From contig OZ025705.1 in assembly GCA_964019335.1 (NCBI GenBank), positions 450,407-514,406 on the forward strand: 64,000 nucleotides of DNA, read 5' to 3'. Of this stretch, positions 1,934 to 64,000 are shown piece by piece. A program made the translations under genes and the position numbers. This DNA comes from Diplonema japonicum (Eukaryota > Protista > Euglenozoa: Diplonemea). The notes beneath the pieces are model-generated. The model was not told the DNA's origin. It saw only the letters and a program-made list of their open reading frames with translations, and did not search any database. Each line of letters opens with the position of its first letter. Within the stretch, counting starts at the first letter, position 1.

Positions 1934-2055
1934 TGCACGACGTCCTAACCCTGGTGGTTGACCATCAGCAATAAGCTACAAAAGGTAATAATACTACTTA
2001 CTGTGTACGGGCAACATTCTTTGAACCTTCTTGAAAAAGAAGGGACATGCTGCGT

Positions 2056-3027
2056 TTAAACACCCGCCACGTTGTACATCCTGTCGGCTCGCATGGGGTG
2101 GTTGGAGCGCAGGTGCTGTTGATTTTCAGTTGCACGGAGACGGAAGGAACGGGTGAGACTGTAAGAGAGGTTTGTGCGTGGCCTCGCAGTGGGGGGGCGG
2201 GGCTTGTTGGGAGGCGTGTACCACGACAGGATGTCAGATGTGTTGAAAGTGGACTGGAGAGATGGCTTTTGCAGCAAGTTGAGCGAATAATACTTCAAGA
2301 ACTTCACCACTGAGATGCATCCAGTGTGGTCGGGTTCTAACTTTTCAACGATATCGGCTACCTGCTGCCAAGACAGCTCTGCAGGGTGTCGGCACACGAG
2401 AGCGTTGCTTTTGAGTGCCGAATAGAAGACCGACACGGGGACCCTGTCGTTCCCATCCGTGAGGGAGAGGAACAACTTCTTCAACCCGTCAACTTTTTTT
2501 TTCAAATCGGTATTTTCCAACGCTGTCATCCGCTCACTGTCACCCAGCACTGCATATGGCGGCGGGGCCCAAGAGGCGCCCAGAATGCTTTTAGGTCTTT
2601 TCTCGCCCAACCCGACATCTGACTTATTCCCAAGCATGGTTTTCCGCATAGATTTATTCAAAGGTCCACCGTAGCAGAACCTGCTCACTTCCTCCTTCTC
2701 GCTCTGCAGGGTGTTGGTGGTGGTGTTGATGTTGGTGTCGGTGGTCTCGGGTTCTCGTCGCACGAGTGCTTTGGGGTCCACGTACCCGTTCTCCGACTTG
2801 CTTTCTACCAGGTCGGCAAGCCATTTCTTATCTCGCATTGTCTTCAAGCCAAGCACTTTGCGTAATCTTCTTGTTGCATCTTCCACCTCTACGACGTCGT
2901 CCAGTGCGAACTCCTTCCACACACTGAAGCTCCGAGCGCGCATGAGGTTCCGCAGCTTGGTCTGCACATCTGTCACAGTGCTCACAGTGGTGCTGACACA
3001 GCTTCCTGATTGGGTTACAAGTGACAT
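2056..3027 (-). CDS. Hypothetical protein (323 aa) with possible degenerate EF-hand pair
   Basis: ATG ORF on the same strand as neighbours; loop-like segments LTDGNDRVPVSVF and LEPDHTGCISVVKF. Confidence 0.6.
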   Translation of the reverse strand: MSLVTQSGSCVSTTVSTVTDVQTKLRNLMRARSFSVWKEFALDDVVEVEDATRRLRKVLGLKTMRDKKWLADLVESKSENGYVDPKALVRREPETTDTNINTTTNTLQSEKEEVSRFCYGGPLNKSMRKTMLGNKSDVGLGEKRPKSILGASWAPPPYAVLGDSERMTALENTDLKKKVDGLKKLFLSLTDGNDRVPVSVFYSALKSNALVCRHPAELSWQQVADIVEKLEPDHTGCISVVKFLKYYSLNLLQKPSLQSTFNTSDILSWYTPPNKPRPPTARPRTNLSYSLTRSFRLRATENQQHLRSNHPMRADRMYNVAGV

Positions 3028-3616
3028 CTTTCCCCTTAGCCCTTTTTTTTCTTTTTTTTCTTATCTTACCTGTGTTGTAAAAAGAATGTCACAACCTGTA
3101 ACATTGCACCCCAATAGTGTTGTGCTTTTTTTTTTTTTTTTTTTAATTATATCTTTTACATGTAAGCCCCCATTCCCAGTGTAGGCCTCTGACCAGAGCT
3201 GGATGGTACGTGTGCCTTGGGGTTTGCTCCTGAGTTGAACCCCACGTGGTTGCTTTGCGGTGCTGCCTGGCCGCCTAGCTTCTGCACAGCATGGGCTGGA
3301 AGGGTACCGGTCATCTTGTATTGTGTAATGCTGAGTAACTAACGTTGCATTTTGAAGAAGAAGAGAAAAAGGGGAAAAAGATAAGAGGGTTCACAACCCC
3401 ACAGGGCCACGAGAGAAACACGAGTAACGAGATAAAAACCACAGCCGAAGAGAAGAAAAAGAGAGCAAATAAAAAAAAGAAGAAGAAGACGCGCGATGTA
3501 CCTACCCATCAGGACCCCTCAGAGGGGCCCATGCAGGACAGAGTAACGGAGAATTAACGTGGGCAACGGGGGCAAGGAGAGCGGGAAGGAGGGTTTTTTT
3601 TTTTTCTTTTTTTTTT

Positions 3617-4801
3617 CTAGTTGTGGTTGGCGAGGGCGAAGCCGACCCTGTTGTTGGCCGCGTCGAAGGTGGTGTAGAACTTCCTCATGAAGACGTCACC
3701 GAGGATGGCACCAAGGTTCTCTGGGAGCTCACCGGGGAAGCCCATGATGCCAGAGATGCACTGGGTGGGCGCACCAGGCTCCTGCACCTGCAAGATGTAG
3801 TCCTCACCAGTGAGCACGTAGGGCTTCCCTGCAAGGGTGACGGTCATGTTGGGGAGCTTCGCGAAGTCAGGGCACGCCTCGAAGACGCACTCGATGCCCG
3901 CGTCAATGCAGCCCAGCTTGCTGTTGATCTTCACAGCTGTGGCCAGGGGGAAGGCAAGGAGAGAGGTGCCGGAGTCCACCACGGAGTCGAAGTGGCTGTG
4001 GACGGTCTCGTTGCCGATGGCAAGGCTGTCGGTGTGGATCTGCCAGTACCCATCCTTGGAGATGGGGACGTACGAGAAGGACCCAGTGTAGTGGTCGGTG
4101 TTGACACCGCCAAGAGCCAGCTCGGAGGTCTTCTTGTGGGGCCACGCCTGGGCGGACAGGTAGAAGGAGAACTGACCAGCATCCACAAGCTTCTGCTGCA
4201 TCATGCTGAAGAAGACGGGGGTGATGCCGTTGACGGAGATCTCGACCCAGCCCATGCCGAGGATGCCGTCGAAGCGGCCCACCACCCAAGGCAGACCGGG
4301 CTCGGCAGTGGTCTCAGCGAAGACCTGCTTCTGGACCTTGATGCCACCGAAGGTGACGGTGTCCTCATCACAGACGCCCCTCACAGCACCGGACCCATAC
4401 AGGATGCTGAAGGCAGTCCCGTTGTACACGTAGCTAGACGACGCGGAGCTGTTGTACTTCTTGTGCACGCAGCCGGAGCAGTTCGCGCCCGGCACCCACA
4501 GGTTCGAGGAACCAGTGTCGTAGATGACCTTGAACTCCTGCTCTGGTGTCCCTATGGACACGGGTCCGTAGTACTGTGCGTTCATGAAGTCAGTGATGGG
4601 CACCTTGGGCACGGCGGTCACAGATGGGGCGTACTTCAAACCCAGCTTCAGAGCCTCGCCCGCGAAGACCTTCCCGCTCAACATCACCTCCTTGAGTGGC
4701 TTGTTGCTTCTGGACTCGATCTTCATCTCCCCCTGCAGAGGGATCTTCACAAGCTCGGCGCTAGCGAGAGCAGCGCACAGCAGAGTACAAAGAGTTCTCA
4801 T
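3617..4801 (-). CDS. Pepsin-family (A1) aspartic protease, cathepsin D-like, with signal peptide
   Basis: Catalytic motifs DTGSSNLW and DSGTS; QYYG.V.IGTP.Q.F, FDGILGMG, ILGDVF..KFYT.FD..N.RVGFA. Confidence 0.96.
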   Translation of the reverse strand: MRTLCTLLCAALASAELVKIPLQGEMKIESRSNKPLKEVMLSGKVFAGEALKLGLKYAPSVTAVPKVPITDFMNAQYYGPVSIGTPEQEFKVIYDTGSSNLWVPGANCSGCVHKKYNSSASSSYVYNGTAFSILYGSGAVRGVCDEDTVTFGGIKVQKQVFAETTAEPGLPWVVGRFDGILGMGWVEISVNGITPVFFSMMQQKLVDAGQFSFYLSAQAWPHKKTSELALGGVNTDHYTGSFSYVPISKDGYWQIHTDSLAIGNETVHSHFDSVVDSGTSLLAFPLATAVKINSKLGCIDAGIECVFEACPDFAKLPNMTVTLAGKPYVLTGEDYILQVQEPGAPTQCISGIMGFPGELPENLGAILGDVFMRKFYTTFDAANNRVGFALANHN

Positions 4802-4912
4802 GGTGTTGTCTGTTGTCTAGTCTGTTGTGTTTATTTTATCTTAACTTTGCTCACTTAAAAGAGGCAATACAAAAAAAAGAGAGAAAGAGAAACGTGTGTG
4901 CCCCGAGCGTCC

Positions 4913-5983
4913 TCAGAGGTAAGATGCATCTATGAAGTCAATGCAGGCAGCCATCTCACACGGCACGTCTTTGTGGTGAGTGAGCTGACCTGCCTCGAAT
5001 TTGAAGATAGCGATGAGATCAGTGTGCTGCTTTTCGAGTAGGGAAGGAGAGATCGCGTGGCACGATGCAAGGAGCCATCCTGAGCAGAAAGTGAAATGCC
5101 TAGGTGTAGTACCGCCAGATGGGGCCCTTGACACAAAGGTTAAACCGCCGGAGGTAGGGTCTCTAGAGAATACAACGATCTCGTTGGTAGTCCTAGTGGC
5201 CGCTAGGACGTAGCCACCACAAGGGGAAGATACGATTTCACTTCCGCCCCTGTGATGCCATCGTAGGGGCGTAACATCAGAGGGCAGCAGCTTAACTTCC
5301 TCACCCTGCAAGGTCATGGTGCGCTCCTCTACCACTGTGATGCCCTGTGTCAGCTCGTTGAGTACATAAATGAAGCCCTCCTGCCTCAGGATTCTTCTAG
5401 GGCCCGCGCCTGTGTGCAGTGTGAGACTCCCCGCAGCCCCGTCCATGTTCCCGCTCGTAAGTTTGATGAAGTCCACACGGTCGGTGCCAAGGTCGCTGAC
5501 GGCAAGGTTCCCGTGGATATCGTAGCACACATGGTGCGGGTGTGGAGCTTCTTGTCTATCCTTCAGAGACGGGTCAGATGGCACACTGCCTGCTGCGGGC
5601 AGAGACACCGCGCTGCATAGCTTGCCCGACTCCAATGTGAAGCATGTGACGTCCCCGCCGCAGTAGTTGGCAGAGTACAGTCGCTGCTTTGTTGTGTCGA
5701 CGAGCAAGTGGCAGGGTGCGCCGCCTACCTCAACAGAGGACACTTGTTCCCCCGTCAGCTTGTACCCCTCGACCCTACCCTGCGGCACTGTCTCGTTTGT
5801 GCAGTACACCATATCGCCGCAGACTGTCACCCAGCTGGGGTTAATTCCCGTGGCCAGCTCCCGCACCTCCTCAGCATCTCCTGTAGCTGTGTCAAACCTG
5901 AACAGCTTCACACTGCGTGCCTTGCTATCCGCTGCCTCGTGCACGTAGTCGCACCTGCCCACCACCAATCCTACTGTTGCCAT
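4913..5983 (-). CDS. 7-bladed beta-propeller lactonase (6-phosphogluconolactonase Pgl/YbhE / cycloisomerase-2 family)
   Basis: Motifs NPSW, GGAPCH, ANY.GG, RQEAPHPH, DLGTDRV, GAGPRR, YVLNEL, GTTPRHF. First ATG is at 5983; the track start at 5989 is a GTG. Confidence 0.88.
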   Translation of the reverse strand: MATVGLVVGRCDYVHEAADSKARSVKLFRFDTATGDAEEVRELATGINPSWVTVCGDMVYCTNETVPQGRVEGYKLTGEQVSSVEVGGAPCHLLVDTTKQRLYSANYCGGDVTCFTLESGKLCSAVSLPAAGSVPSDPSLKDRQEAPHPHHVCYDIHGNLAVSDLGTDRVDFIKLTSGNMDGAAGSLTLHTGAGPRRILRQEGFIYVLNELTQGITVVEERTMTLQGEEVKLLPSDVTPLRWHHRGGSEIVSSPCGGYVLAATRTTNEIVVFSRDPTSGGLTFVSRAPSGGTTPRHFTFCSGWLLASCHAISPSLLEKQHTDLIAIFKFEAGQLTHHKDVPCEMAACIDFIDASYL

Positions 5984-6098
5984 CTTCACGTTCTGTGGCA
6001 GGTGTGTTTACTGAACAGTGCAAACAAACAAAGCTATTTATGAAAGCACAGAAAGGTTAGGTGCAAGCTTTCAGCGGGGGTTCAATATAAAAAAGACA

Positions 6099-7337
6099 TC
6101 ACGCAACCCATGACCTCAGAGGGTTCCTTTCGGGGACATAGTAGTAGCTGGTGGAACAAGGGATGAGCTGCCACCAGATGGGGCAGGAGTCTGGTGTGCC
6201 GTGGAAGACTGCGTTTGAGGGCCCCCAGTGGGGGATGAGCTCACCGAGCGGGGCTCTGTTGATGTGCCAATGGCCAGAGGGAGCACCCTCGCCATGCTTC
6301 ATGAAGTCAACAGAGAAGAGAAGCACCCAATGTGAAGAAGCGTTCTTGTAGTAGATAAGATTGTGGTGCACCTCGAGGGGTGTCTCGTGAGGTGAGACAC
6401 TGACGACCTTGTACCTGTAGGCCTTATCAACACATGTCTTGCTGACGTCCTCGTTGAGGGAGGTGATGGCACAGGACTCGGCAGAGACTCTGCTGAAGAT
6501 GTGAGTGTAGAGAATGTCGTCAAGAGGTTGAGGCTGGAGGATGTCCTTGACGATGGGTTCGAGGGTGGAACCACAGTAGATGTGCTGGAGCGCTTTTGAC
6601 CTTTTGTAGTAGGTGGCGGAGTTCTTGGTTTTGTGCTCTTCAAGGCACCGCATGATGCGGCCGGCATCATAGCGAATAAGGCTCGCCTCCCACTTTACAC
6701 CGACTGTTTTTGTTACAATCAATTCCTGTCCTCCGGCTTCAAGCAGCTTGCCGTCGATGTCGCTGATGTAGCATGACTTGGCGATGGCAGCGTAGCGGGG
6801 CTGGGCGCCTGCCTTTGCACTGCGTGAGAGGGTTGTGATGAAATCGCGCACGTCCTCCACAGACCAGTCTTCCACGTGAAGGTTCAGTTCGGAGATCCAA
6901 TAACTGTCGAAATACTTCTCTTTGCATATCACTTCGACTTCTTCGTCATCGCCGTCGCCTTCTTCTTCAGGGGCGACTTCCTCTGGTTTCACTTCCTCTT
7001 TCACAATAGGAGGCTCCTCTTCTTCTTCTTCCTCTTCCGTTGGTTCTTCTTTGTCAGGGTCGTCATAGAGGTGCATGATGTCTATCAGGATGCCTTGTCG
7101 GCCATGTGTTCGCTCCCATTCCTCGGGGATCCATTTCAAGATCTTTTTCTTGTCCTTCGTTTTCAGGATGTCAGGGGACTCTCTCCTGAACTTGCACCAT
7201 GCTTGCATGGTGGCTTGTTTTCGGGCGGCTTTGGTCGTCGTTGAGTCTTCGTGCTCTTCGTACCAATAATACACATTGAGGAACCATTCAAAGATGGTTT
7301 TGGGGTCAGGGTGTAAGGGGGTCGGTGCAGAATGCAT
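6099..7337 (-). CDS. Hypothetical protein (412 aa) with acidic linker and possible SAM-like segment
   Basis: Long ATG ORF on the coding strand; WSVEDVRDFI resembles a SAM-domain start. Confidence 0.6.
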   Translation of the reverse strand: MHSAPTPLHPDPKTIFEWFLNVYYWYEEHEDSTTTKAARKQATMQAWCKFRRESPDILKTKDKKKILKWIPEEWERTHGRQGILIDIMHLYDDPDKEEPTEEEEEEEEPPIVKEEVKPEEVAPEEEGDGDDEEVEVICKEKYFDSYWISELNLHVEDWSVEDVRDFITTLSRSAKAGAQPRYAAIAKSCYISDIDGKLLEAGGQELIVTKTVGVKWEASLIRYDAGRIMRCLEEHKTKNSATYYKRSKALQHIYCGSTLEPIVKDILQPQPLDDILYTHIFSRVSAESCAITSLNEDVSKTCVDKAYRYKVVSVSPHETPLEVHHNLIYYKNASSHWVLLFSVDFMKHGEGAPSGHWHINRAPLGELIPHWGPSNAVFHGTPDSCPIWWQLIPCSTSYYYVPERNPLRSWVA

Positions 7338-54066: not shown

Positions 54067-54445
54067 GGGGCTCTGGTCTACAAGCAGGGTGAGAGCTGCC
54101 ACGACCCAAGGTGCAGGACTGAGGGGATGGATGTATGGGGTGACCATGCCCAGGGATGTGGCAATGCCAGGATTGCAAGGCATGACTGGGTGAAGGAGAC
54201 CATCCACAGACACTGTCAGTGGGCTGGGGTGAGTGCAATGATGGAGAAGATGGGGCTGATCCTGGGGTTGTCCCAGTGCCCAGCAGATGTGTTCTTCCCA
54301 GGTGGGGTGGGGGGTTCCCACCCAATGGCTATGGATGTGGTCATTGTGCACCCAAGGAACAAGTCTTGTGTCAACCAGGTGGTGAAGACTGTGGGGTATG
54401 CAGTGGCAAAGGTGGAACACTACAAGTGCCAGAAGTATGAGGCAG
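54067..54445 (+). mobile_element. Decayed fragment of the zinc-knuckle/endonuclease region of the retrotransposon at 56745-64000
   Basis: Gap-free alignment to 62752-63130 at a constant offset of 8685. Confidence 0.95.
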
Positions 54446-55800
54446 CCAGAGTGGAGGCAGCCAGTTGGGGCCTGACACACCTAGGGGTGGGATCCAGATG
54501 CCAGAGGGAGATCAGCTGATGGGAGTTGGGGCACCAGAAAGGGAACAGTGGGTGGAAGTAGGGGGAGACTTTGTTCAGCTTGACCTGATTGATGTGGTGA
54601 TGGGCATCCCAATTCCGAGAGCAATGGTGCCACTGAGGGTGAGGCTGGGGGACCGACTGCTCAAGTTCATCATCCAGTTTGAGGGCTGGGTGGGGATCAT
54701 CCTTGAAGAAGGAACAGACCCTGGAAGGGAGAGGACTGAGGAGATGCTTCTTGTGAAGGCTGAGTTGCTGGGTGTTCCACTGGGTTGGATGGAGAGTGCC
54801 ACAGCCACATTGTGGGTTGTGAGGTGCAGAAGTTGGAAACATACCATGAGTTTGAGTTCCTGAGGATGGTCCAGGATTTCCAGATCACATACGTGTGTGG
54901 GTGTTCGGCAGTGCAACCTGTTTGTTTCAAGGGTGGCGTGCTCAAGGGGACTCTGGAAATGGCATGGAGGGTGGTCAAGTTGCAGACCCAGGGGTGCAGA
55001 CACTGGGGAAGGAAGGGGTAGTGGGCATTGTGGTGGGAGCCAGCACTACCAAGGTGACACTACATGAGTTCTTGGAGAGGTGCAACACAAGGATAAGGGC
55101 CCCAGTGGGAAAGGTCAAGGACCTGATCAAAGTGAAGGCGTGGGTGAGGGATGGAAGGAAGGTCACCCTTGACATCTATGAGGGGAGGGGGCCCTGTGAG
55201 AAGGAGACAAGGTGCACTGTCCAAGACCATCTGTGGAAGATGGGTGTTGAAGAGGTTGACCTGCAGTCAGTGGTGGTGATGGTCCTGGGGTTGTTTGAGG
55301 ATGTCTCCTTTGAGAGGTACCTTGGGCTGTTGGCCTGGAAGAAGGAGGAAGACAGGGAGAGGTGGCCTGAGGTGGTTGCCACAGACCTCCCCACCCTGGA
55401 AGAGCTGAAGTGGAGCAAGAAGGACAAGAAGTGGGCCCAGGCCTGATGGGCCAGTACTGACTTGGATTGTGTGGAAGGTGGCTAGGTATGGGGGTGGATG
55501 GCACCGTGGTCAAAGCCAACATATGCAGGGGTGAGCTCAAGGGGATGACTGGGCCCCAGTTCAAGTTCTTGGCAGAGCACAGGTTGATGGAAGAGCTGGG
55601 GAGTGACAACCTGGTGTGGGACATGGTCAAGGTGCACAACAAGGAGAACTGGGCCCTGGTGAACAGTGCAGTGGCTTGGCTGCAGCTCGAGTCAGGGAGG
55701 GCACAGGTGGGGCCCATACCCCACAAGAAGAGGTCCAAAGGCTTGCTGGCCAGTGGGGGTGTGGGGGGCTGGTCCCCCCCCCCCTGCCATAGGAAGATGT
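54446..55800 (+). other. GC-rich, strongly CpG-depleted relic with coding-like texture, probably from another mobile element
   Basis: Purine-rich plus strand with broken frames (e.g. 54895-55446); fewer than about 10 CpGs seen in ~1.35 kb; no motif recognised. Confidence 0.4.
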
Positions 55801-56432
55801 GAAACTTTTTTTTTTTTTTTTTTCCAAGAAAAAAAAGGGAAAAATAAAAGAATAGGGAACAGGTGCTACAACAGCCAGGCCAGATAGAACCACTTAGATT
55901 TTTTTTTTTTTTCCTTTTTTTTTTTTTTTATTTTTCTGTTTTTCTTTTTCTTTTTGAAGTGGAACCATCTCAGTCAATGTTTTTTTTTTTTTTTTCTTCT
56001 TTTTTCTTTTGTGGTGATGTGTTTTTCCTGTTTTTGATTTTCTTCTTCCCCCACTCTATGCTTTTTCACATGGACATTGGTCACTCTGCCCCTTTCCCCT
56101 TTGTTGATTCTCCCTCTTTCCCCCTCCTAAATTTTACCCCCTGCCCCACTCATTCCTCCCTAGTATGTTTTTGAATTTGCCTCTTCTTCTTTTAAGCCTT
56201 TTTTGAGATTTTTATTTTTGAATTTTTATCATTTGGAGTTGCTTCTTCATCTTCCCCTCTCCCTCCCATAAAGAAAAAGAGAAACCCATGCCTTCCTCCC
56301 AGGTTGGAACTTGATTGTCTGTTTTGGAATATTTTTATTTTCTCTTAAGGTTTATCGTGCCTTGTGTGTGTCTTTTGAAGAAAAAAAAAAAACATTCTCA
56401 AGTCCCCCTTTTTATTTATTTTCTCAAGTCCC

Positions 56433-56464
<32 letters not shown>

Positions 56465-56490
56465 TTCTCAAGTCCCTCTTTTTATTTATT

Positions 56491-56544
56491 ACCAACGATT
56501 CTAAAGCTACAGTTTCTGTACTTTATTGTTTCTGTACTTTATTG
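56491..56544 (+). other. Spliced-leader exon copy (38 of 39 nt, 56491-56528) followed by a 16-nt truncated SL (56529-56544)
   Basis: accaacgattctaaagctacagtttctgtactttattg + tttctgtactttattg. The 3' half matches the conserved euglenozoan SL (CAGTTTCTGTACT.TATTG). Confidence 0.9.
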
Positions 56545-56744
56545 GTTGTTCATGTTCTGCTGGTGCCTGCCACCTCTGCCTGGGTTTGCCACTGTGTCCA
56601 TCGTCCATCGTCACCATTTTCTTGGGGGGTTGTTTTGCCTGTCAGCCTGCCAAACCCGCAAACCTGCAAACCTGCAAACCCGCAAACCCGCAAACCCACA
56701 AACCTGCAAACCTGCAAACCCGCAAACCTGCCTGCAAACCCACA
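56491..56744 (+). mobile_element. Short non-autonomous derivative: SL, truncated SL, ~107-bp element head and a degenerate (GCAAACCC)n tract
   Basis: 56545-56651 aligns with 56784-56890 and then passes directly into the same 8-mer repeat found at 63787. Confidence 0.7.
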
Positions 56745-56783
56745 AACCAACGATTCTAAAGCTACAGTTTCTGTACTTTATTG
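56745..56783 (+). other. Full 39-nt diplonemid-type spliced-leader exon at the 5' end of the retrotransposon
   Basis: AACCAACGATTCTAAAGCTACAGTTTCTGTACTTTATTG is exactly 39 nt and about 2 nt different from the Diplonema papillatum SL as I recall it. Confidence 0.92.
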
Positions 56784-56955
56784 GTCGTTCGTGTTCTGCT
56801 GGTGCCTGCCACCTCTGCCTGGGTTTGCTGCTGTGTCTGTTGTCTGTTGTTGCCATCGTCTGGGGGGGTTGTTTTGCCTGTCAGCCTGCCCGCTGCTTAC
56901 CGAAAGGATCCCCTCCCCCAACACACACTTTAAAAAAAAATAAAAAAAATAAAAA

Positions 56956-59900
56956 ATGGATCCAAGATGGAACGCAAGAGGAGGTGACCATGCAAACCGC
57001 AGGGAGAAGGAACCCCAACAGGCCGCCAGGCTGCACACGATGCCAGGGCCAACCCAACCAGACTATCTGGTTGGGCAGTATGAATCCCCACCCCCACCCC
57101 CTAGATCCCCCCACCCCCCTTTAGAAAAAAAAAATAAAATAAAAAAATCACTAGCAGAGACCGCGGTTTTGACCGCTGCTGCTACAGTTGCAACCACGAT
57201 CCCTGCAGCCGACCCTGCTATTGTTGAAGAGGGAAGAAAAGAGGGAGAAAAAAAGGGGTGGGTACTGGTGTATGGTGAACACCCTCCTGGGTTGAGGACG
57301 GGCCCGGCCCCTGCCTTCCTGAAAGCCCTGCTTTCAGGAAAGTGGGAGGCCCTGTCTGGGAACTCAGGGAGGGAGACCCTCCAATATGGGTACCGGTGGG
57401 AGGGGATGAACGCCAAGGTGTGCCCCACCATGGGGATCCCAGGGGGGGTGGAGGGGTGGGTGAGGGAGGTGGCTGCTGCTGCAGGGCTTGAGGTGGTCCC
57501 CAACCAGGTACTTGTCAACAAGTACAAGTCTGGTTGTGGGATTGCCGCCCACAAGGACGACGTGAGGCTGGGACCGATTGTCCTAGTCCTCTCGTATGGA
57601 GCTGAGACCACAATGGTCATGAGGAGGGGGGACAGGGTGGTGAAATACCTGGTGCCCCCCTTCTCATGGGCATTGTTGGAAGGTGAAGCGAGACACCAGT
57701 GGACGCACCACATCCCGTCTGGGATGTCCACTGGTGTCAGGGTGTCGATCACCCTGCGTGCGGTAGGCCCCAAGCTCACCTGCACACCCCAGGAAGACCC
57801 ATCCCCTGGGTTAACAGACGAACCCCCTTTTTTAGATCCCCTTTTTTGTGGGCAAGGGGGGGTGGCACTCCCAAGAGAGGATAGTGCCCCACCTGCCCCC
57901 CTTTTTTTTTTAGAACCCTCTTCGGAGGAAAACAGACCCTCTTCGGAGGAAAATAGAGAGAAAGGGGAAGAGGTGGCACTCCTGAGAGAGGGTGGTGCTC
58001 CTCCCCCCCATTTGTCCCCCCCTTTTTCATTTTTAGAGCCCTCTCCAGAGGAACCCTCCACGGAGGTAAAAAACAGACCCTCTTCGGAGGAAAACAGAGA
58101 GAGAGGGGAAGAGGTGGCACTCCTGAGAGAGGGTAGTGTTCCTCCCCCCCATTCGTCCCCCCCTTTTTCTTTTATAGAGCCCTCTCCAGAGGGACCCTCC
58201 ATGGAGGTGAAAAACAGACCCTCTTTGGAGGAAAAAAAGGCAGAGGGAGAGACAGCACGCCTGAGAGAAGGTAGTGCCCCTCCCTCTCTGCCCCCCATTT
58301 TTTCTGGACCCTCTATGGAGGTGTACACCCTGGTCCCCAAGGGCCGGGGGCTTTTTTTGAGGGTGGAAGGGAAAGAAAAAAAAAAAACAAACAAGGAGGA
58401 ACCTTTTTTCTTTTCAAACAACCAGGGGGACCCAGCACCCACCCCCACCGCCCGCCAAGGTGTGGTTGGGGTGGAGGCTGCGAGCGACGTGAGAGCACCA
58501 CTGCACACCCTTGTGAGAAGACAGAAAAGAGCCCCCTGGATTGCCATGGGTGGCAGGGAACCTAAGCCAGCGCCCAAGCGGAAGAAGAACAGGAGGAGGC
58601 ACAGGAGCGAAGCGGCCCTTCAGAGGCGTCGGGAGAAGAGGACCAAGGCGAGGGAGGGGGCGAGGGAGGCTGCCAGACAGGAGAAGAAAAGGCACCGTCG
58701 TGCGAGGAAAGAAGGGAGGAGGAGGGCCTGCAGAGAGGAACACGAGGCCGCCCTGGAACAGAAGCCAGATGACCCTGCAATGGGGCTGAAGCGGACCGAG
58801 GTGGGAACGCCTGGAGCCCAACCCCTGGCACCCAGAATCCCGGCACCTGGGGCTGCAACCGGCACAAGGAGGCACCGCAGACGGACGGGACACAGCAAGG
58901 AAGGGGTGAGATGGGAGCACCTGGGGGCGTGGGCCTGGGTCGCCCTGTTCTCCCTCTTGCTGATCCCAGGGGTGAGGCAGGTGCTGGGGGTGGGCATCGG
59001 GATGGCCCCCTCCTTCCTGCATGCGGCAGTGTTGTGGAAGAGGCCGGGGAGCGACAGGAGGACCACCCGCAGGTCAAGGGTACAGGTGGGGCCCCGAGGG
59101 GATGAATGGTCCGCCGGGGAGCTCGCTTGGCTAGCGGTAGGGGGCACTCTGGTGGGAAGCACTTCAGTTTGGATAGGGGGGCTGATGTCGCTCTGGGCCA
59201 TGGTGGAAGTGATGGTGGGGAAAGCTGGTGCTGGCCCGACCCAGAGATTCGGACCGGTAAAGCTGAAGAAGACAAGACGCGGATCGAGAGGTCACTACCG
59301 GCCGGTGTACTTGGGCCCGCCTAGAAGCTCAAGACGCAGAAAAAAGAAGGAGGACGCCAAGCAAGCGGCGAAGGAACGAGCTGAGACGGAGGATAAGCTC
59401 TTTCAGGCCGAACACCTGGACCCCTTTGCGGACTTGACGCTGGCAGGGGACGCGTTGCAAGGAGGTGGTGACCCTCCCCCCATGGATTTGGATGATGAGC
59501 ACATGGAGGCGCAGAAGGAGGGGGAAAAAGAAGGATCAGACAAACATCAATGCCGGATGGAAGACTGCTCTTTCCGCACCAGTGTGGCAAGCTGTCTAGT
59601 TAAACACCTCAATGCGGTCCACCATCATTTTGTGAAACAAGAGCAGGCGAGGAGCATGAAGGTGAACCTCTGTGGAACGTGTGCTGCGGCGTGCTCGTCG
59701 AACCAGACGCACTGTGCACTACACAGGCAGCGGAATCTGTGGAACCCCGACAAACAACCCAGGGCCGGCAAGTCAGTGGACGAGATCATGAAGAGCTTCA
59801 AGCTGACGAGGAGATCGACGGAGAAGGACGGGAACTGCATGTTCCACGCCCTGGCCGGTTCGCTCGGGGAAGCCTACGGCGACCACACCCACATCAGGAG

Positions 59901-62900
59901 CGAGGTTGTAGAATGGATGAAACACCGGGAGGAGCACTATGCCCCGTTTTGCAGTGAGGGTTGGGACCGGTACTTGGAAGGGATGGGCACAGCAGCGACG
60001 TGGGGAGACCACTTGTGCCTGGCAGCCGCAGCACAAGCGTTTGGCCGCACGATACTCGTGGTTGCTGGGGGGAACAACCCAGTCCTGATGATAGGGGAGT
60101 ACAACTCCGACCACGAGAAGGTGGTGGTGCTGGCGTACAACGGCAACCACTACGAGTATGCAGTCGGAGAGGAGGAGTCGATGATGATGCTCCTTGATGA
60201 GTCCCAATCGGTAGCTCTACAAAAGGCAGGTAAGCAACCCTCCGAGGCCCCGGGTGAGGACATCGGGGAGTGGGACATAATAGACCGTGCGATCCCTGGA
60301 TACGGGAAGGCAGGGGTGTTGGACCAGATGGGGGCAAGGAACCAGCAATTCCTGTACTGTCCGGTGGCGAACTGCGCTAGGTCGAAGTGCAAAAGCACGA
60401 CCCCGTTCAACTCGACAAGGGTATGGAAGTGTCACCTGGATGGGCACCTGGAGAGTGATGAGATCCCGGAGAGCGTTCTGAGGAGACTGGACCTCGAGAG
60501 GTGCCTGGTGTGCAGGGGCTGTGTGTGGAAGGGTCAGGGGTGCCACGACGAGTGCAAAAAGGCGGTGCGAAGGGAAGGGGAATACACGACCCCCCCGCCG
60601 GCCCCGACGAGGACCGAGTTACCCAGCCTGGAAGCCATAGCCGCCATGAACGTCACGACCATGGGGTCGATCCCGACGAGCCTTCAAAGACTGTGGGGGC
60701 TTACCCTTAAGCACACTCTGGGCCGGGCGGTGAAGGACAACACAGAGGAGGCTTGGCTGCTGGTGGCGATGCTCCCCAAAGCCTGCCTGTGGAAGAAGAG
60801 GGGAGGGAAGAAGCGGGACAAGGAGACGGAGCTGAGTGTCCAGGCCAGATTGGAGGAGTGGGAGAAGGGAAATTACATGGCCCTCTGGAATAAGCTGGAA
60901 TCAGGTGAGAAGGGGGAACCTAAGAACGACGAGGTCTCTAAGGTCGCCAGGGCCACGGAACTGTGCAGCAAAGGGAGGTTCTCGGCAGGAAACGCGGCGC
61001 TTGTAGCCCAGGGGCTGGCGGAAGACAATGAGGATTGCTGGAGAGCGCTGCAGAGCAAACATCCAGAGCCACTACACCCCCAATGGGACAACCCGGCGAA
61101 GACGAAGGAAGCGGTAGAAGTCTTGCCAGAAGAAGTGCTGGACGCAATCAGGGACTTCCCGAGGGGGACTGCTGCGGGACCGACTGGTCTGAGAGCCCAG
61201 CACATCAAGGACGCGGTGGACGGAGCTTTTGAGTCTCAAGGCTGTTTGATGTCGGTGACGAGGGCAGTCAACGCATTAGCTAGAGGCACGGCCCCTAGGG
61301 AGGTGGCTCCGCTGATGGCAGGGGCGAACCTTGTGGCCCTCAAGAAGAACGACAGGGACGTGCGGCCCATAGCCGTTGGGGATGTGCTGCGTCGGCTGGT
61401 GGGGAAATCCCTTGTGAAGAAGATCGCTCCGGAAGTGGCCTCTTCGTACCTGAAGAAAGGCGGCCAGGTGGGGGTATCGGTCCCTGCTGGAATGGAGGCG
61501 GCTATACACACCATCAGGCAGTATGTGGACAGGGAACGGGGCAACAAGCAGGAAAACAAGGTGATCCTCAAGATCGACTACGCCAACGCCTTCAACAGTG
61601 TTTGTCGGAGGCAGCTGTGCTCACAGGCCTATGAGCAAGCGTCGGGGCTGTATGCGTGGGCCGATTGGTGCTACAGGGTGCCCTCCCAATTATACTACAA
61701 CGGAAAGGTGATTAAGTCCCAGGAAGGGGTGCAACAGGGGGACCCGATGGGACCGCTGCTGTTCTCTCTGGCCATCCAACCCCTGGTGAACAAGATAAGT
61801 GAAGACTGCAACCTGGACATCCTCCAGTTCTACCTGGACGATGGCGTCCTTGTGGGGAATGTGGATGAAGTGAGAAAGGCGTACAACATCTTGTGTGAGC
61901 TGAGCGGAATGATAGGGCTGAAAGTGAAACCCCAGAAGTGCGAGCTCATATGGGTTAGTGGCGACCTCCCCCAGACAGTGGAGGACACAGGCTTCGATGG
62001 CCTGACAGAAGAGAATTTCCACAAAGAGAGGAACTTCATGCTCCTGGGGGCGCCGATAGGATCGCCGGAGTACACGCAAGCCTTTCTGAACAAACGCTTG
62101 GACGCGCTGGAAGAGAACTTCGACATGCTGACCAAGGTGGGGAGGCAGACAGGGTACACACTTCTCCGGTATTGCAGCTCATACAGCAAACTGGTGTTTT
62201 ACATGAGAGTGGTCCCAGACTCGCATGTGGGAGGGGTCATGCACAGGTTCGACGAGATGGTGCGGAAGACGATGTCGAAGGTGTGCGGCATGCAGTTCGA
62301 GAACGGGTCGAAAGAATGGCAGCAGGCGAAACTGTCCGTAAAAGTCGGTGGGCTTGGGATGAGGAGCTGCCAGGAGCACCTGCGCGCGGCCAACATGGCT
62401 TCGAGGGCGTCGACGATGAAGCTGTGCAAGGAGCTGGATCCCAAATACGAACATGGGCTGGAAGGGGGTGTATGGGGGAGCTGGCTCGAGTGGTTCAACA
62501 GGACGAAGGGCGGCATGCAGATTACACCCGACATGGTGGCCAAGGCCCCCCACATCTGCAGCCAGAGGTGGCTCTCTAGGGTGCTTGATGAGAAGGCGCT
62601 GGAGGACCTCTTGGCGAAAGCAGATGCACGCTCGAGAGCGAGGTTGATGTCGGAGTCAATGCACTATGCGGGAGCGTGGTTGACGGCGACGCCTGACTTC
62701 TACAACCAGCTGTCGGACAACGAGTTTGGGGCTCTGATCAAGTGGTGGTTGGGGGCTCCGGTCTACAAGCAGGGTGAGAGCTGCCACGACCCGAGGTGCA
62801 AGACTGAGGGGATGGACGTATGGGGTGACCATGCCCAGGGATGCGGCAACGCCAGGATTGCGAGGCACGACCGGGTGAAGGAGACCATCCACAGACACTG

Positions 62901-64000
62901 TCAGTGGGCCGGGGTGAGCGCAACGATGGAGAAGACGGGGCTGATCCCGGGGTCGTCCCAGCGCCCGGCGGACGTGTTCTTCCCAGGTGGGGTGGGGGGT
63001 TCCCGCCCAATGGCTATGGACGTGGTCATCGTGCACCCGAGGAACGAGTCTTGTGTCAACCAGGCGGCGAAGACTGCGGGATACGCAGCGGCGAAGGCGG
63101 AACACTACAAGCGCCAGAAGTATGAGGCGGAGCTCGCCAAGACACGCGTGGCCTTTGTACCTTTCGCGATGGAGACCTTTGGGGGGTTCGGGGAGGCAGC
63201 AGTCTACCTCACGAAGAAACTGTCCAGGAGCATAGCTGCGCGGGCTCACGGGGACAGAGTCTCGATACACAGGCGTGTGGTCCAAGAGGTGTCAACGGCC
63301 ATGATGAGATCGATAGCAGGGGCGCTGTTAGTCAAAGGGCCTGTACAGTTGGATCCAGGGCCCCCGGTACCGGACGGCGAAGAGGAAAAAAAGGACAACG
63401 AGGAAGCGAACAACGAACCCAACACTGAATCCAACACTGACCTCACAGAGGACTCCTTCGGCAATGAAAAAACCACCGAAGCTGAGGAGTCGTCCGAGAG
63501 GGAAGTGAAGGGACAGGGAGGCGGACCCCCAATCACGGTGGCCCACCAGCTGGATGCCCTTCTGGAGCAGACGAAGAAGGACCTGGACGCCCGAATGCAG
63601 CAGCAGCGAAAGGCGGAACCGGTGGAGGGTGGAACACAAGGGAAAGCGGGAGCAGGACTCGAAGCAGCCTCGCCGGGAGGAGAAGACACGGAGATGGTCG
63701 GAACAGGATCCAGCGAGAGGGCTGGGCAGGGAGGGGAGCTTGACCCGAAGGCCCAGGAAGATGGGAAGAGACAAGGGGCGACTGACGCAAACCCGCAAAC
63801 CCGCAAACCCGCAAACCCGCAAACCCGCAAACCCGCAAACCCGCAAACCCGCAAACCCGCAAACCCGCAAACCCGCAAACCCGCAAACCCGCAAACCCGC
63901 AAACCCGCAAACCCGCAAACCCGCAAACCCGCAAACCCGCAAACCCGCAAACCCGCAAACCCGCAAACCCGCAAACCCGCAAACCCGCAAACCCGCAAAC
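56956..64000 (+). CDS. Retrotransposon polyprotein >=2348 aa: AlkB, Pro/Glu repeats, basic/hydrophobic region, C2H2, OTU, Zn fingers, RT, CCHC, RLE, acidic tail
   Basis: Manual frame +1 translation from ATG 56956 (in-frame TAA at 56950) finds no stop to 64000. Not in the ORF track because there is no stop codon. Confidence 0.92.
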   Translation, partial: MDPRWNARGGDHANRREKEPQQAARLHTMPGPTQPDYLVGQYESPPPPPRSPHPPLEKKNKIKKSLAETAVLTAAATVATTIPAADPAIVEEGRKEGEKKGWVLVYGEHPPGLRTGPAPAFLKALLSGKWEALSGNSGRETLQYGYRWEGMNAKVCPTMGIPGGVEGWVREVAAAAGLEVVPNQVLVNKYKSGCGIAAHKDDVRLGPIVLVLSYGAETTMVMRRGDRVVKYLVPPFSWALLEGEARHQWTHHIPSGMSTGVRVSITLRAVGPKLTCTPQEDPSPGLTDEPPFLDPLFCGQGGVALPREDSAPPAPLFFLEPSSEENRPSSEENREKGEEVALLREGGAPPPHLSPPFSFLEPSPEEPSTEVKNRPSSEENRERGEEVALLREGSVPPPHSSPPFSFIEPSPEGPSMEVKNRPSLEEKKAEGETARLREGSAPPSLPPIFSGPSMEVYTLVPKGRGLFLRVEGKEKKKTNKEEPFFFSNNQGDPAPTPTARQGVVGVEAASDVRAPLHTLVRRQKRAPWIAMGGREPKPAPKRKKNRRRHRSEAALQRRREKRTKAREGAREAARQEKKRHRRARKEGRRRACREEHEAALEQKPDDPAMGLKRTEVGTPGAQPLAPRIPAPGAATGTRRHRRRTGHSKEGVRWEHLGAWAWVALFSLLLIPGVRQVLGVGIGMAPSFLHAAVLWKRPGSDRRTTRRSRVQVGPRGDEWSAGELAWLAVGGTLVGSTSVWIGGLMSLWAMVEVMVGKAGAGPTQRFGPVKLKKTRRGSRGHYRPVYLGPPRSSRRRKKKEDAKQAAKERAETEDKLFQAEHLDPFADLTLAGDALQGGGDPPPMDLDDEHMEAQKEGEKEGSDKHQCRMEDCSFRTSVASCLVKHLNAVHHHFVKQEQARSMKVNLCGTCAAACSSNQTHCALHRQRNLWNPDKQPRAGKSVDEIMKSFKLTRRSTEKDGNCMFHALAGSLGEAYGDHTHIRSEVVEWMKHREEHYAPFCSEGWDRYLEGMGTAATWGDHLCLAAAAQAFGRTILVVAGGNNPVLMIGEYNSDHEKVVVLAYNGNHYEYAVGEEESMMMLLDESQSVALQKAGKQPSEAPGEDIGEWDIIDRAIPGYGKAGVLDQMGARNQQFLYCPVANCARSKCKSTTPFNSTRVWKCHLDGHLESDEIPESVLRRLDLERCLVCRGCVWKGQGCHDECKKAVRREGEYTTPPPAPTRTELPSLEAIAAMNVTTMGSIPTSLQRLWGLTLKHTLGRAVKDNTEEAWLLVAMLPKACLWKKRGGKKRDKETELSVQARLEEWEKGNYMALWNKLESGEKGEPKNDEVSKVARATELCSKGRFSAGNAALVAQGLAEDNEDCWRALQSKHPEPLHPQWDNPAKTKEAVEVLPEEVLDAIRDFPRGTAAGPTGLRAQHIKDAVDGAFESQGCLMSVTRAVNALARGTAPREVAPLMAGANLVALKKNDRDVRPIAVGDVLRRLVGKSLVKKIAPEVASSYLKKGGQVGVSVPAGMEAAIHTIRQYVDRERGNKQENKVILKIDYANAFNSVCRRQLCSQAYEQASGLYAWADWCYRVPSQLYYNGKVIKSQEGVQQGDPMGPLLFSLAIQPLVNKISEDCNLDILQFYLDDGVLVGNVDEVRKAYNILCELSGMIGLKVKPQKCELIWVSGDLPQTVEDTGFDGLTEENFHKERNFMLLGAPIGSPEYTQAFLNKRLDALEENFDMLTKVGRQTGYTLLRYCSSYSKLVFYMRVVPDSHVGGVMHRFDEMVRKTMSKVCGMQFENGSKEWQQAKLSVKVGGLGMRSCQEHLRAANMASRASTMKLCKELDPKYEHGLEGGVWGSWLEWFNRTKGGMQITPDMVAKAPHICSQRWLSRVLDEKALEDLLAKADARSRARLMSESMHYAGAWLTATPDFYNQLSDNEFGALIKWWLGAPVYKQGESCHDPRCKTEGMDVWGDHAQGCGNARIARHDRVKETIHRHCQWAGVSATMEKTGLIPGSSQRPADVFFPGGVGGSRPMAMDVVIVHPRNESCVNQAAKTAGYAAAKAEHYKRQKYEAELAKTRVAFVPFAMETFGGFGEAAVYLTKKLSRSIAARAHGDRVSIHRRVVQEVSTAMMRSIAGALLVKGPVQLDPGPPVPDGEEEKKDNEEANNEPNTESNTDLTEDSFGNEKTTEAEESSEREVKGQGGGPPITVAHQLDALLEQTKKDLDARMQQQRKAEPVEGGTQGKAGAGLEAASPGGEDTEMVGTGSSERAGQGGELDPKAQEDGKRQGATDANPQTRKPANPQTRKPANPQTRKPANPQTRKPANPQTRKPANPQTRKPANPQTRKPANPQTRKPANPQTRK
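63787..64000. repeat. Perfect (GCAAACCC)n array, >=26 units, open at the window edge
   Basis: Direct inspection. Confidence 0.98.

Follow-up and report, generated by a model that had tools for sequence, protein, structure and literature searches.

The window analysed here is a stretch of 64,000 nucleotides from Diplonema japonicum (G000:C58:450407-514406), and its end is also the end of a contig, as 514406 is the last base of C58. All the features described below lie on its + strand. Its last part, window:56956-64000(+), is a single stop-free frame, and translation gives the 2348 codons in frame +1 that a preliminary description of this DNA had announced; the frame was absent from the list of open reading frames because it runs off the window. 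The whole length is open, but it is not all coding. Codons 2277-2348, the last 72, are only the translation of a terminal 8-bp array, (CGCAAACC)x26.9, which occupies 63786..64000 at the contig end and is joined to what precedes it through a CGC microhomology. The polyprotein ORF proper thus covers 56956..63785, with 2276 codons, and it is truncated, the intact ORF of the family having 2804 aa.

The polyprotein begins with an AlkB-type 2OG/Fe(II) dioxygenase (57358..57759; Pfam PF13532, aa 135-268, E 2.8e-12), followed by a 141-bp (47-aa) in-frame tandem repeat found by TRF (57929..58284), two hydrophobic stretches visible in the translation and the alignment (58930..59271) and a C2H2-type zinc-finger motif, C-x4-C-x12-H-x4-H (59551..59625, aa 866-890). 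Then come an OTU cysteine protease or deubiquitinase domain (59827..60144; PF02338, aa 958-1063, E 4.9e-12), a Cys/His zinc-finger block 5' of the reverse transcriptase (60358..60555), the reverse transcriptase (RT) itself with its linker (61000..62780; RVT_1 core 61342-61953, aa 1463-1666, E 2.2e-16), and finally a CCHC motif with a restriction-like PD-(D/E)XK endonuclease (RLE), recognised by the motif series C..C..H..C, RHD, E, RPAD, D (62782..63330). This architecture had been read from the sequence in the preliminary description, and it largely stands: the Pfam models 2OG-FeII_Oxy_2, OTU and RVT_1 all exceed their gathering scores where AlkB, OTU and RT had been placed, the repeats announced after AlkB are the 141-bp ones, and the C2H2 finger (~59550-59625) and the CCHC/RLE region (~62780-63330) were correctly located, the latter with Cys, His and Asp columns conserved across lineages. 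For the zinc fingers in general, the Cys/His motifs are present and their columns are kept across lineages, but neither the C2H2 motif nor the others receive a Pfam call, so that they are supported at motif level only. The hydrophobic segments do exist in the window copy, but they are confined to family 1 and are not conserved; a role as a general membrane anchor was rejected, as neither families 2 and 3 nor D. papillatum have them. The number of 141-bp repeats varies from copy to copy, and the AlkB-to-OTU distance is accordingly either 2343 or 2484 bp, the difference being 141 bp.

Upstream of the ORF, the 5' end of the element is a 39-nt spliced leader (SL; 56746..56784), whose opening AACC is shared with the repeat before it, and a 5'UTR (56785..56955) delimited by sequence reading and by comparison with the copy on contig C9. 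It is preceded by degenerate (CAAACCYG)n, variants of the contig-end array unit (56651..56747), which separate it from a 5'-end stub (56491..56650). The stub, identified by sequence reading and an SL match, consists of a spliced leader, a duplicated 16-nt SL tail (the 16-bp duplication is detected by TRF) and about 105 nt of 5'UTR, where it is cut off and the terminal repeats follow. The duplication, at 56512-56544, hints that the SL may be joined by trans-splicing to read-through RNA, for example at the internal ACAG, a start of transcription at SL +1 being the alternative. Further upstream lies an older family-1 3' fragment, degenerate and internally deleted (54067..56490), with part of the C-terminal ORF, the 3'UTR and an A25 run. 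It matches F5933-6309, F7186-7520 and F7600-9333 of the full-length C9 copy at 90-94% (blastn), with C>T and G>A overrepresented among the differences. The focal copy corresponds to positions 3-6969 of the intact C9 copy; it is 3'-truncated by 2366 bp, at position 6969 of the 9335-bp full-length element, and the array caps it directly. Truncated in this manner and carrying 37 C>T changes, the window copy is dead. We propose that the window records, in this order, an old fragment, a 5' stub, degenerate repeats, the truncated focal copy and the terminal array. An Rfam scan of the window gave nothing at gathering scores. The preliminary description had missed that this copy is both terminal and truncated, and that its family is telomere-associated and headed by the spliced leader.

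The family has at least 60 RT matches in the genome, 23 of them 100% identical over 777 aa, and nearly all lie within ~13 kb of contig ends with their 3' end outward. It is found at most contig ends, as head-to-tail chains with terminal repeat between the units. Our close comparison took in 30 RT-centred loci plus a few small stretches. An intact copy is found at the left end of C9, where SL, a 2804-aa ORF, 3'UTR and A-run, ~9.3 kb in all, are followed by the array. Full-length copies without AlkB and OTU, or a chimeric join, would have refuted the architecture; neither holds. AlkB, OTU and RT lie in one open frame in five family-1 copies (C58, C9, C16, C31 and C97), ~20 further copies are colinear with equal domain spacing, and a few internally deleted derivatives lack parts of the AlkB/OTU region. 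The order recurs on dozens of contig ends, and public data agree with it: contigs of four independent public runs cover parts of the element, and one of 3003 bases spans OTU to RT with zero differences. No LTRs were found, the 5' and 3' parts of the full-length copy showing no cross-match. After the RLE, the intact copies have a C-terminal extension (aa ~2130-2804) without Pfam match and without similarity to the tails of the other lineages.

The 8-bp repeat in which these copies sit is found at contig termini genome-wide, with 5621 pattern matches to (CGCAAACC)n, on the - strand at left ends and on the + strand at right ends. The arrays begin at base 1-2 of the contigs or finish on their last base, as far as the assembly, without raw reads, can tell. 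No TTAGGG arrays were found in the genome, which has a TERT-like gene (Telomerase_RBD, 28.4 bits, above cut-off). Neither the sequence nor the polarity of the terminal repeat is usual; that (CCCGCAAA)n is the 3'-ending strand at the physical ends is presumed, in the absence of overhang or raw-read data. Both junctions of the element lie in this repeat, and its copies keep to the contig ends. Each of six terminal copies breaks off at a site of its own and is capped by the array, the repeat register being continued at 4 of the 6 junctions. Given the contig-end position and the 3'-outward head-to-tail chains, we therefore class the family as an RLE-type (CRE-like) non-LTR retrotransposon that is associated with the telomere repeat and copied from a trans-spliced mRNA.

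This mRNA origin is connected to the 5' end of the element, at which the repeat passes directly into the spliced leader with the AACC overlap. The SL 35-mer occurs 215 times in the genome. The sequence that follows the SL in two dispersed loci and in most read contigs is presumably, judging from its recurrence, the intron of the SL RNA gene, and the sequence after the SL of the element differs from it. The possibility that the element 5' end is an SL RNA gene, in the manner of SLACS, was rejected on this ground. Other mRNAs are also present as dispersed SL-headed genomic copies, which implies an RT activity on mature mRNAs. The copying of the element from a trans-spliced mRNA is drawn from this DNA without RNA evidence. 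Its current expression is likewise inferred only, no run being on record as RNA and only assembled contigs being available.

The AlkB domain keeps the HxD...H triad, NxY and RxSxTxR invariant across the element lineages in the alignment; in domain numbering, H99, D101, H151, N88, Y90, R162 and R168 are invariant or nearly so in 32 sequences. Its AF2 model (pLDDT 93.6) matches ALKBH6/2/8/3/5 with TM 0.71-0.78 and probability 1.00. These structural neighbours include enzymes of DNA, mRNA and tRNA alike, with no discrimination among them, and the matches also include the replicases of Grapevine virus T, GRSPaV and an ampelovirus. According to the model, then, the fold is confirmed and the domain looks competent, demethylase activity and substrate being inferred. 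Its nearest database relatives are small stand-alone proteins at 35-40% identity, and the host homologues reach only 29-36%, on which grounds a recent capture of a host gene was rejected. The OTU domain, whose best homologues of known structure are OTUD5 and OTUD3, conserves a DGNC/GGDC Cys motif and an H-Y His motif in all lineages of the alignment; it too looks competent on these residues, its activity being inferred. Further along the polyprotein, the C2H2 Cys/His columns are common to all AlkB-bearing lineages, and the zinc-finger block 5' of the RT is conserved in families 1-3 and in the relative P0004.

The best solved homologues of the RT are R2 proteins (E 8e-8), and hundreds of relatives cover 94-100% of the RT-RLE region; deubiquitinase domains, of OTU or USP type, are present in relatives of the same RT group. 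Families 1-3, D. papillatum and P0004 all keep the RLE motif series. In family 1, its spacing is 1-3 residues off the published CRE/SLACS consensus, and R-P-A-D stands where the consensus has R/K-P-D; the series thus has P-A/G-D in the place of P-D (PMC12857005). A non-LTR type RT, a CCHC motif with PD-(D/E)XK endonuclease, the lack of LTRs and a 3' A-run meet the criteria of the R2/CRE group. Of the traits of the CRE clade, site-specific insertion, which in that clade is into SL RNA genes or telomere repeats, is also seen, with the terminal repeat as target. Placement in the CRE clade itself is no more than hinted at, as it rests only on the naming of the D. papillatum homologues in GenBank, no reference sequences having been compared. 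No T. brucei or Crithidia protein is among the 120 best listed matches to the RT-RLE region, and a protein atlas offers only unnamed RVT_1 clusters for this RT, with no clade name.

The same combination extends well beyond the window copy. AlkB, OTU, RT and RLE are found in one ORF in three D. japonicum families, whose RTs are 46-47% identical; in families 2 and 3, AlkB, OTU and RVT_1 each exceed the Pfam cut-offs within a single ORF. The D. papillatum proteins P0222 and P0223 also carry AlkB, OTU and RVT_1, at 34% identity over 1312 aa and 39% in AlkB. The RT-RLE tree unites families 1-3 in a clade (SH-aLRT 100) whose sister is the AlkB-bearing clade of D. papillatum (SH-aLRT 91). The conserved catalytic residues argue that the AlkB/OTU kit is integral to the element and old, as far as sequence comparison can establish it, and both domains have been kept at least since the split of D. 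japonicum from D. papillatum. A literature search found no paper on AlkB in any non-LTR element, and we found the combination of AlkB and OTU described for no retrotransposon of the RLE-type class. The expectation that such an element was undescribed is therefore met in the literature searched, but the architecture is present unrecognised in GenBank, where the models of the D. papillatum homologues are named only 'SLACS 132 kDa protein'.

We consider it likely that these observations belong to a single model: a multi-copy RLE-type non-LTR family living in terminal arrays, with a cycle through an SL-headed mRNA and with AlkB and OTU as integral parts. The mature mRNA would begin with the 39-nt spliced leader and finish with the A-run, and from it would be translated one polyprotein of ~2800 aa, in the order AlkB, repeat and basic spacer, C2H2, OTU, zinc fingers, RT, CCHC/RLE and a lineage-specific C-terminal part. 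AlkB would strip m1A, m3C or m6A lesions or marks, which would otherwise block or restrict reverse transcription, from the ~9-kb template RNA, and OTU would remove ubiquitin or ubiquitin-like tags from proteins of the element or of the target site, and/or cut the polyprotein; these roles within the element are inferred, not shown. The zinc fingers and the RLE would nick the terminal repeat on its G-rich strand (TTTGCGGG), a nick site that is itself inferred. Chromosome ends would then erode into the element until repeat addition re-caps them, and repeated cycles of insertion, erosion and re-capping would yield the head-to-tail chains.

Several other explanations account for part of these data. 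The idea that the AlkB/OTU part is foreign, whether it belongs to a host gene next to the element or results from chimeric assembly or from read-through in the annotation, could draw on the frame breaks that some copies have between AlkB and OTU or between OTU and RT, and on the existence of deletion derivatives devoid of AlkB/OTU parts; it is refuted for practical purposes, since the SL lies upstream of AlkB, a single ORF contains all domains not only in at least five copies of family 1 but also in families 2 and 3 and D. papillatum, the AlkB and OTU genes of the host show only 26-36% identity and sit at internal positions, and the AlkB-bearing lineages are monophyletic in the RT tree. The near-identity of the copies is less easily interpreted: recent transposition could explain it, and so could subtelomeric recombination or gene conversion. 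On C99 (period 6021, x3) and C24 (period 10659, x4), identical deleted units stand in tandem arrays, which shows that recombination or duplication does take place. One may then suppose that the elements are hardly or no longer mobile, and that they came to nearly all ends mainly because one block was spread and homogenised by subtelomeric recombination, break-induced replication and gene conversion, a view that would suit these arrays, the 23 copies without a single difference over 777 aa and the mosaic 5' regions (over its first ~400 bp, the C9 copy has 69% identity to the window copy, and it matches family 2 at its N-terminus). We hold this to be improbable, however: the SL stands at the exact start of every unit and the A-run of the intact C9 copy adjoins the repeats, individual junctions are found on many different chromosomes, the dispersed SL-headed copies of other mRNAs point to reverse transcription of mature mRNAs, and intact 2800-aa ORFs persist in three families.

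The origin of the chains can also be questioned. R2-type RTs are known template jumpers, and jumps within a single integration, in which the RT passes from the 5' end of one RNA to another RNA or to one that contains the repeat, could produce head-to-tail units without any cycle of erosion, re-capping and new insertion. Some junctions do look like this: in runs X2 and X4, 58525>56748 is joined by 'C', 59535>56748 by 7 nt and 62353>56748 with one repeat unit between, while on C9 a 3'UTR-truncated copy is joined to the next SL via 'TGTGC'. Yet each of the six terminal copies has a long perfect array as its cap, at cut sites that differ from copy to copy, four of the six with register-keeping microhomology, and such caps fit end erosion and repeat addition; besides, the inter-element repeats of the window are old, being degenerate. 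Jumping as a substitute for these cycles is thus possible but doubtful, and both mechanisms may coexist. A different question is whom the family serves. The HeT-A, TART and TAHRE elements of Drosophila are telomere elements that serve their host, and a family that occupies most chromosome ends in a fixed orientation, in three coexisting and end-restricted versions, next to a terminal repeat of unusual sequence and polarity, might be a domesticated telomere component of the same kind rather than a telomere parasite. This seems improbable to us given that element-free ends exist (C1 opens with the array and has none of the RT matches listed), that truncated copies are capped straight by repeats, so that capping needs no element, that a TERT-like gene is present and that old copies show CpG>TpG decay, which suggests silencing by the host. 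Finally, we regard as unlikely, without excluding it, a self-contained telomere-building retrotransposon in which all the parts act jointly. Under this joint reading, the DNA-encoded spliced leader would be a portable start or re-splicing signal; AlkB would act in cis on the element's own 9-kb RNA, clearing it of methyl marks that block the RT or are imposed by the host; OTU would counter ubiquitin-based restriction, the flexivirus module having been re-invented convergently; and, with the C-rich strand as the 3'-ending one, the element and 8-mer repeat addition would alternate to maintain the ends.

Under the model that we favour, that of a mobile family cycling through an SL-headed mRNA, these elements are relevant beyond D. 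japonicum. To our knowledge, few domains other than RT and endonuclease are known in non-LTR retrotransposons (RNase H, esterase, Ulp1 protease), and here a diplonemid lineage retains AlkB and OTU in its polyprotein, in the domain order of flexiviruses. This makes it possible to test, in a culturable protist, the idea that RNA methylation and ubiquitin tagging are general barriers to RNA-templated replicators, which parasites repeatedly answer with the same two enzymes. It also bears on genome annotation: the 'dozen AlkB-type genes' of D. papillatum have been taken as evidence for regulatory demethylation (PMC10161547), and at least some of the AlkB-type genes of this species are retrotransposon domains. 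In D. japonicum, the family marks and builds the chromosome ends of a genome with an unusual terminal repeat.

The known systems each share some of these features. CRE1/CRE2, SLACS and CZAR are RLE-type non-LTR elements of other Euglenozoa, the trypanosomatids; they also have N-terminal zinc fingers, and they insert into spliced-leader RNA genes; we know of no report of AlkB or OTU in them. Whereas they target SL genes, the diplonemid family has a whole SL of its own for a 5' end, and its target is the terminal repeats. SL exons are among the listed targets of non-LTR elements, and some RLE-type elements have gained a protease for ubiquitin-like modifiers upstream of the RT; these, however, have the Ulp1/C48 fold in place of OTU, target SL or U2 genes and carry no AlkB (PMC4640811). 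MoTeR1 of Magnaporthe, FoTeR of Fusarium and Cnl1 of Cryptococcus are telomere-targeted non-LTR elements of the CRE group, and they resemble the diplonemid family in having a single large ORF with RT, then CCHC and restriction-like endonuclease, in inserting in the terminal repeat with end restriction and fixed orientation, and in having variable repeats in the 5' part (PMC12857005). In both cases, we infer, the sense strand is continuous with the C-rich strand of the repeat. The fungal ORFs, though, have only ~1150-1180 aa against 2804, without AlkB or OTU, and it is their 5' end that faces the terminus (PMC12857005), while in the diplonemid family it is the 3' end, because the terminal repeat has the opposite polarity at contig ends; nor do the fungal elements have a spliced leader as 5' end.

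For the two accessory enzymes, the comparison has to be made elsewhere. Orchid Ty3/Gypsy elements have fixed an ALKBH5-like AlkB, a protein that binds RNA and demethylates m6A in vitro, but these are LTR elements with AlkB in an extra ORF, recent and limited to one plant genus (PMC9289625), unlike the diplonemid family, which is non-LTR, has AlkB inside the polyprotein and is common to two Diplonema species. The parallel with plant virus replicases that had been drawn from the sequence is a documented one: AlkB followed by OTU is the order found in flexivirus replicases, in Carlavirus, Foveavirus and others (PMC544882). The flexivirus polymerase is an RdRp and the diplonemid one an RT, in a protein without methyltransferase or helicase; the likeness is convergent, with no sign of common descent. 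The roles suggested for the AlkB-then-OTU module in flexiviruses are nonetheless the very ones that we propose for AlkB and OTU in the diplonemid element.

We find that frame +1 of the window runs for 2348 codons without a stop (56956-64000), as the preliminary description had claimed, and that the mechanical ORF list omits it because it extends past the edge of the window, which coincides with the terminus of contig C58. The three domains proposed for it were all recovered on the + strand above the Pfam gathering scores, namely AlkB (2OG-FeII_Oxy_2, aa 135-268), OTU (aa 958-1063) and reverse transcriptase (RT; RVT_1, aa 1463-1666). The announced repeats and fingers are also there, as a 141-bp tandem repeat and, at the motif level, a C2H2 motif, a second Cys/His block and a CCHC/endonuclease block, but the hydrophobic segments are not conserved, being confined to family 1 (the family of this element) in the alignment of the element lineages. 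No recognisable relatives were found for the C-terminal extension of the element protein. Nor does the coding sequence reach 64000: the frame is open, but its last 72 codons are non-coding and only translate the perfect 8-bp array (CGCAAACC)x26.9 at the contig terminus.

Our full-length reference is a natural copy, and not a consensus, found at the left extremity of contig C9 and joined from three loci. This intact copy measures 9335 bp and comprises, from 5' to 3', a 39-nt spliced leader (SL) with the 5'UTR, a 2804-aa ORF starting from an ATG, about 740 bp of 3'UTR and a short A-run, after which (CCCGCAAA)n continues up to the contig end. The focal element (56746-63788) corresponds to its positions 3-6969, and 2366 bp are thus missing at the 3' side, with 528 codons and the 3'UTR among them; the terminal array (63786-64000) follows directly. 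The focal copy is thus a dead terminal copy, and its frame stays open through the repeat by chance. Upstream of it lie an older, internally deleted 3' fragment of another copy (54067-56490, 90-94% identical to the C9 copy), a stub made of the SL and part of the 5'UTR (56491-56650) and degenerate terminal repeats (56651-56747), 230 bp upstream of the focal ATG. Compared with other copies, the focal one carries 37 C>T changes and only 5 G>A (57190-59382), all of them confined to its 5' 2.4 kb. At 31 of the 37 C>T changes the context is CpG; a C stands at these positions in every one of the four public runs, which were compared as assembled contigs and of which none is recorded as RNA. In the old upstream fragment (54067-56446) the counts are 81 C>T and 43 G>A. 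This pattern suggests that the elements are methylated at CpG sites and that deamination favours one strand, a bias that remains unexplained.

A query with the RT and the restriction-like endonuclease (RLE) matched at least 60 places in the assembly, 23 of them with 100% identity over 777 aa. For nearly all of them the distance to a contig extremity is at most about 13 kb, with - strand matches at the starts and + strand matches at the ends, so that the 3' end of the element faces outward. Individual copies were read at RT-centred loci and at a small number of contig ends. In places, identical units are repeated in tandem at an end (period of 6021 bp on C99 and 10659 bp on C24). AlkB and OTU queries led to the same contig ends, with order and spacing unchanged: AlkB and OTU are 2343 or 2484 bp apart, a difference of one 141-bp repeat, and OTU and RT 1260 bp. 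The architecture would have been called into question by full-length copies devoid of AlkB and OTU; five family-1 copies (C58, C9, C16, C31 and C97) keep all three domains within one open frame, whereas a few local copies are internal-deletion derivatives without OTU or most of AlkB. At its N-terminus, the intact copy on C9 is closer to family 2, a related family of the same genome, than to the window copy, and the 5' regions are therefore mosaic. The left end of C9 also holds a mini-copy (locus L032, rc 428-1550), flanked by the intact copy on one side and a short repeat tract on the other, in which an internal deletion fuses the SL and 5'UTR directly to the 3'-most ~330 bp of the ORF, followed by the 3'UTR. 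In the public run X4 (organism B), the element reaches an extreme summed depth of 1e5-1e6 over more than 18,000 contigs with many internal joints, which reflects either an enriched or odd library or very many rearranged copies. Away from the ends, at least 8 dispersed internal copies of an open frame of ~1640 aa (C99:159464, C106:13922, C11:169165, C24:291721, C44:459152, C79:171916, C82:172692 and C83:328995) match OTU distantly, all with the same score and 27% identity, and probably represent another repeated element with an OTU domain.

The 8-bp repeat itself lies at contig termini. Searched as a 4-unit pattern, it occurs 5621 times in the genome, where contigs open with an array on the - strand (from base 1-2) and close with one on the + strand (for example C1:2-385, C3:999813-999964 and C4:2-329). 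No TTAGGG array was found in the genome, and one gene matches the Telomerase_RBD family above the cut-off (TERT-like, C41:533974-534300). As judged from the assembly alone, the strand ending 3' at contig ends is the C-rich (CCCGCAAA)n, the reverse of canonical telomeres. The genome note of D. japonicum YPF1604 (62.3 Mb, 118 chromosomes) is silent on telomeres and transposons (PMC13598402).

In the proposed mechanism, a nick in the G-rich strand (TTTGCGGG) would prime target-primed reverse transcription, the T-run of this strand being able to pair with the A-tail of the element RNA. The nicked strand and any current activity are inferred; the junctions fit, because the A-run of the intact C9 copy abuts CCCGCAAA at the 3' side and, at the 5' side of the element, the repeat abuts the SL with AACC common to both. 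Chromosome ends would then erode into the element, and repeats would be added to the strand whose 3' end forms the terminus. Six terminal copies end at six positions (6145, 6486, 6825, 6969, 7710 and 7900), each directly followed by a long perfect array, which is the pattern expected from such erosion and healing, and at 4 of the 6 the repeat register is kept through 1-3 shared bases, as in de novo telomere addition. Besides, in contigs of other runs truncated copies are joined to the next SL via zero to one repeat unit, and one on C9 via 5 nt; template jumping by the RT probably also contributes to such chains, in addition to erosion and healing.

The 5' start of the element is the SL, AACCAACGATTCTAAAGCTACAGTTTCTGTACTTTATTG, a 35-mer of which occurs 215 times in the genome. 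What follows it in the element (GTCGTTCG...) is the element's own which, together with the A-run, indicates that copies are made from a mature, trans-spliced, A-tailed mRNA. Ten dispersed internal occurrences have different sequences downstream. At two of them the SL runs on into GTACCCAATCTGATCC..., which public read contigs also show most often after the SL and which is probably the intron of the SL RNA. These loci, L037 (C2:150530-150730) and L039 (C4:649960-650160), with GTACCCAATCTGATCCATGATCAATAAACC..., the commonest sequence after the SL in those contigs, are probably true SL RNA genes, dispersed instead of forming one array. The other complete SLs (L036, C2:58400-58600; L038, C3:59710-59910; L040-L045 on C6, C7, C10, C21, C3:788220 and C11) often have a T-run upstream and differ downstream, with one further repeated family common to L038, L042 and L043, and resemble retrocopies, headed by the SL, of other RNAs. 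In the stub (56494-56544), the last 16 nt of the SL are present a second time after it (duplication at 56512-56544), as could be expected from re-splicing at ACAG within the DNA-encoded SL.

The accessory domains appear intact. The HxD...H iron triad, NxY and RxSxTxR of AlkB are invariant across all element lineages and in the alignment with 29 stand-alone relatives. Its AlphaFold model (mean pLDDT 93.6) matches ALKBH6, ALKBH2, ALKBH8, NMAD-1, ALKBH3 and ALKBH5 (TM 0.71-0.78), and ALKBH8 is the nearest solved protein by sequence; neither subfamily nor substrate can be assigned. AlkB serves as a laboratory tool for clearing m1A and m3C, which arrest reverse transcriptases, ahead of tRNA sequencing. 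The most economical reading, with the activity inferred, is that AlkB acts on the element's own RNA; m6A influences the fate of retroelement RNA (PMC9289625). The Cys (DGNC/GGDC) and His (HY) motifs of OTU are conserved across element lineages, with OTUD5 and OTUD3 as the nearest solved proteins, and this domain may process the polyprotein, remove ubiquitin-like tags, or both, its activity being again inferred. The latter, deconjugation, would be favoured as the selected activity, because relatives in the same RT group carry either OTU or an unrelated USP fold (gene predictions on short metagenome contigs) and NeSL/Utopia elements carry Ulp1 (PMC4640811). The endonuclease series C..C..H..C, RHD/N, E, P-A/G-D, D, also conserved across the lineages, resembles the CRE/SLACS/MoTeR consensus with small spacing differences (PMC12857005).

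Families 2 and 3, also confined to contig ends, each encode AlkB, OTU and RVT_1 in a single ORF, with all three domains passing the Pfam cut-offs. Their identity to family 1 is 46-47% for RT-RLE, 70% and 54% for AlkB, and 34% and 38% for OTU. When the AlkB domain served as query in an exhaustive search without profiles, the closest match reached 40% identity, and Diplonema papillatum clusters were among the long matches. As for other diplonemids, the same order was indeed found in D. papillatum, in KAJ9442719.1 (2635 aa; 34% identity to the window protein over 1312 aa, plus 39% in AlkB) and KAJ9464152.1. GenBank names these homologues 'Retrotransposable element SLACS 132 kDa protein' or 'tRNA ... 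methyltransferase'. A maximum-likelihood RT-RLE tree of 32 regions (midpoint rooting only, no named reference elements) unites families 1-3 in one clade (SH-aLRT 100), the sister of which is a D. papillatum clade (SH-aLRT 91), and the OTU-only and USP-bearing relatives fall on other branches. Judged from these comparisons, the AlkB-OTU-RT architecture is integral to the element and old. The D. papillatum genome paper interpreted a 'dozen AlkB-type genes' as pointing to demethylation with a regulatory role (PMC10161547); at least the AlkB clusters seen here in that species are retrotransposon domains.

In full-text literature searches, of incomplete coverage and not extending to Repbase/Dfam, no description was found of AlkB in any non-LTR element, which agrees with the earlier statement for the CRE clade, nor of these diplonemid elements. 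OTU domains have reportedly been seen in Helitrons and Ginger transposons. AlkB is known in orchid LTR elements (PMC9289625), and fungi have telomere-targeted CRE-type elements (PMC12857005). SLACS and CRE are inserted in SL RNA genes, whereas the diplonemid element is not. The parallel drawn with plant RNA viruses is borne out, since the AlkB-then-OTU order is documented for flexivirus replicases (PMC544882), and viral AlkB domains are among the structural neighbours of the element model. As far as sequence alone can tell, this likeness is convergent, because the sequences nearest to the element AlkB are small stand-alone proteins.
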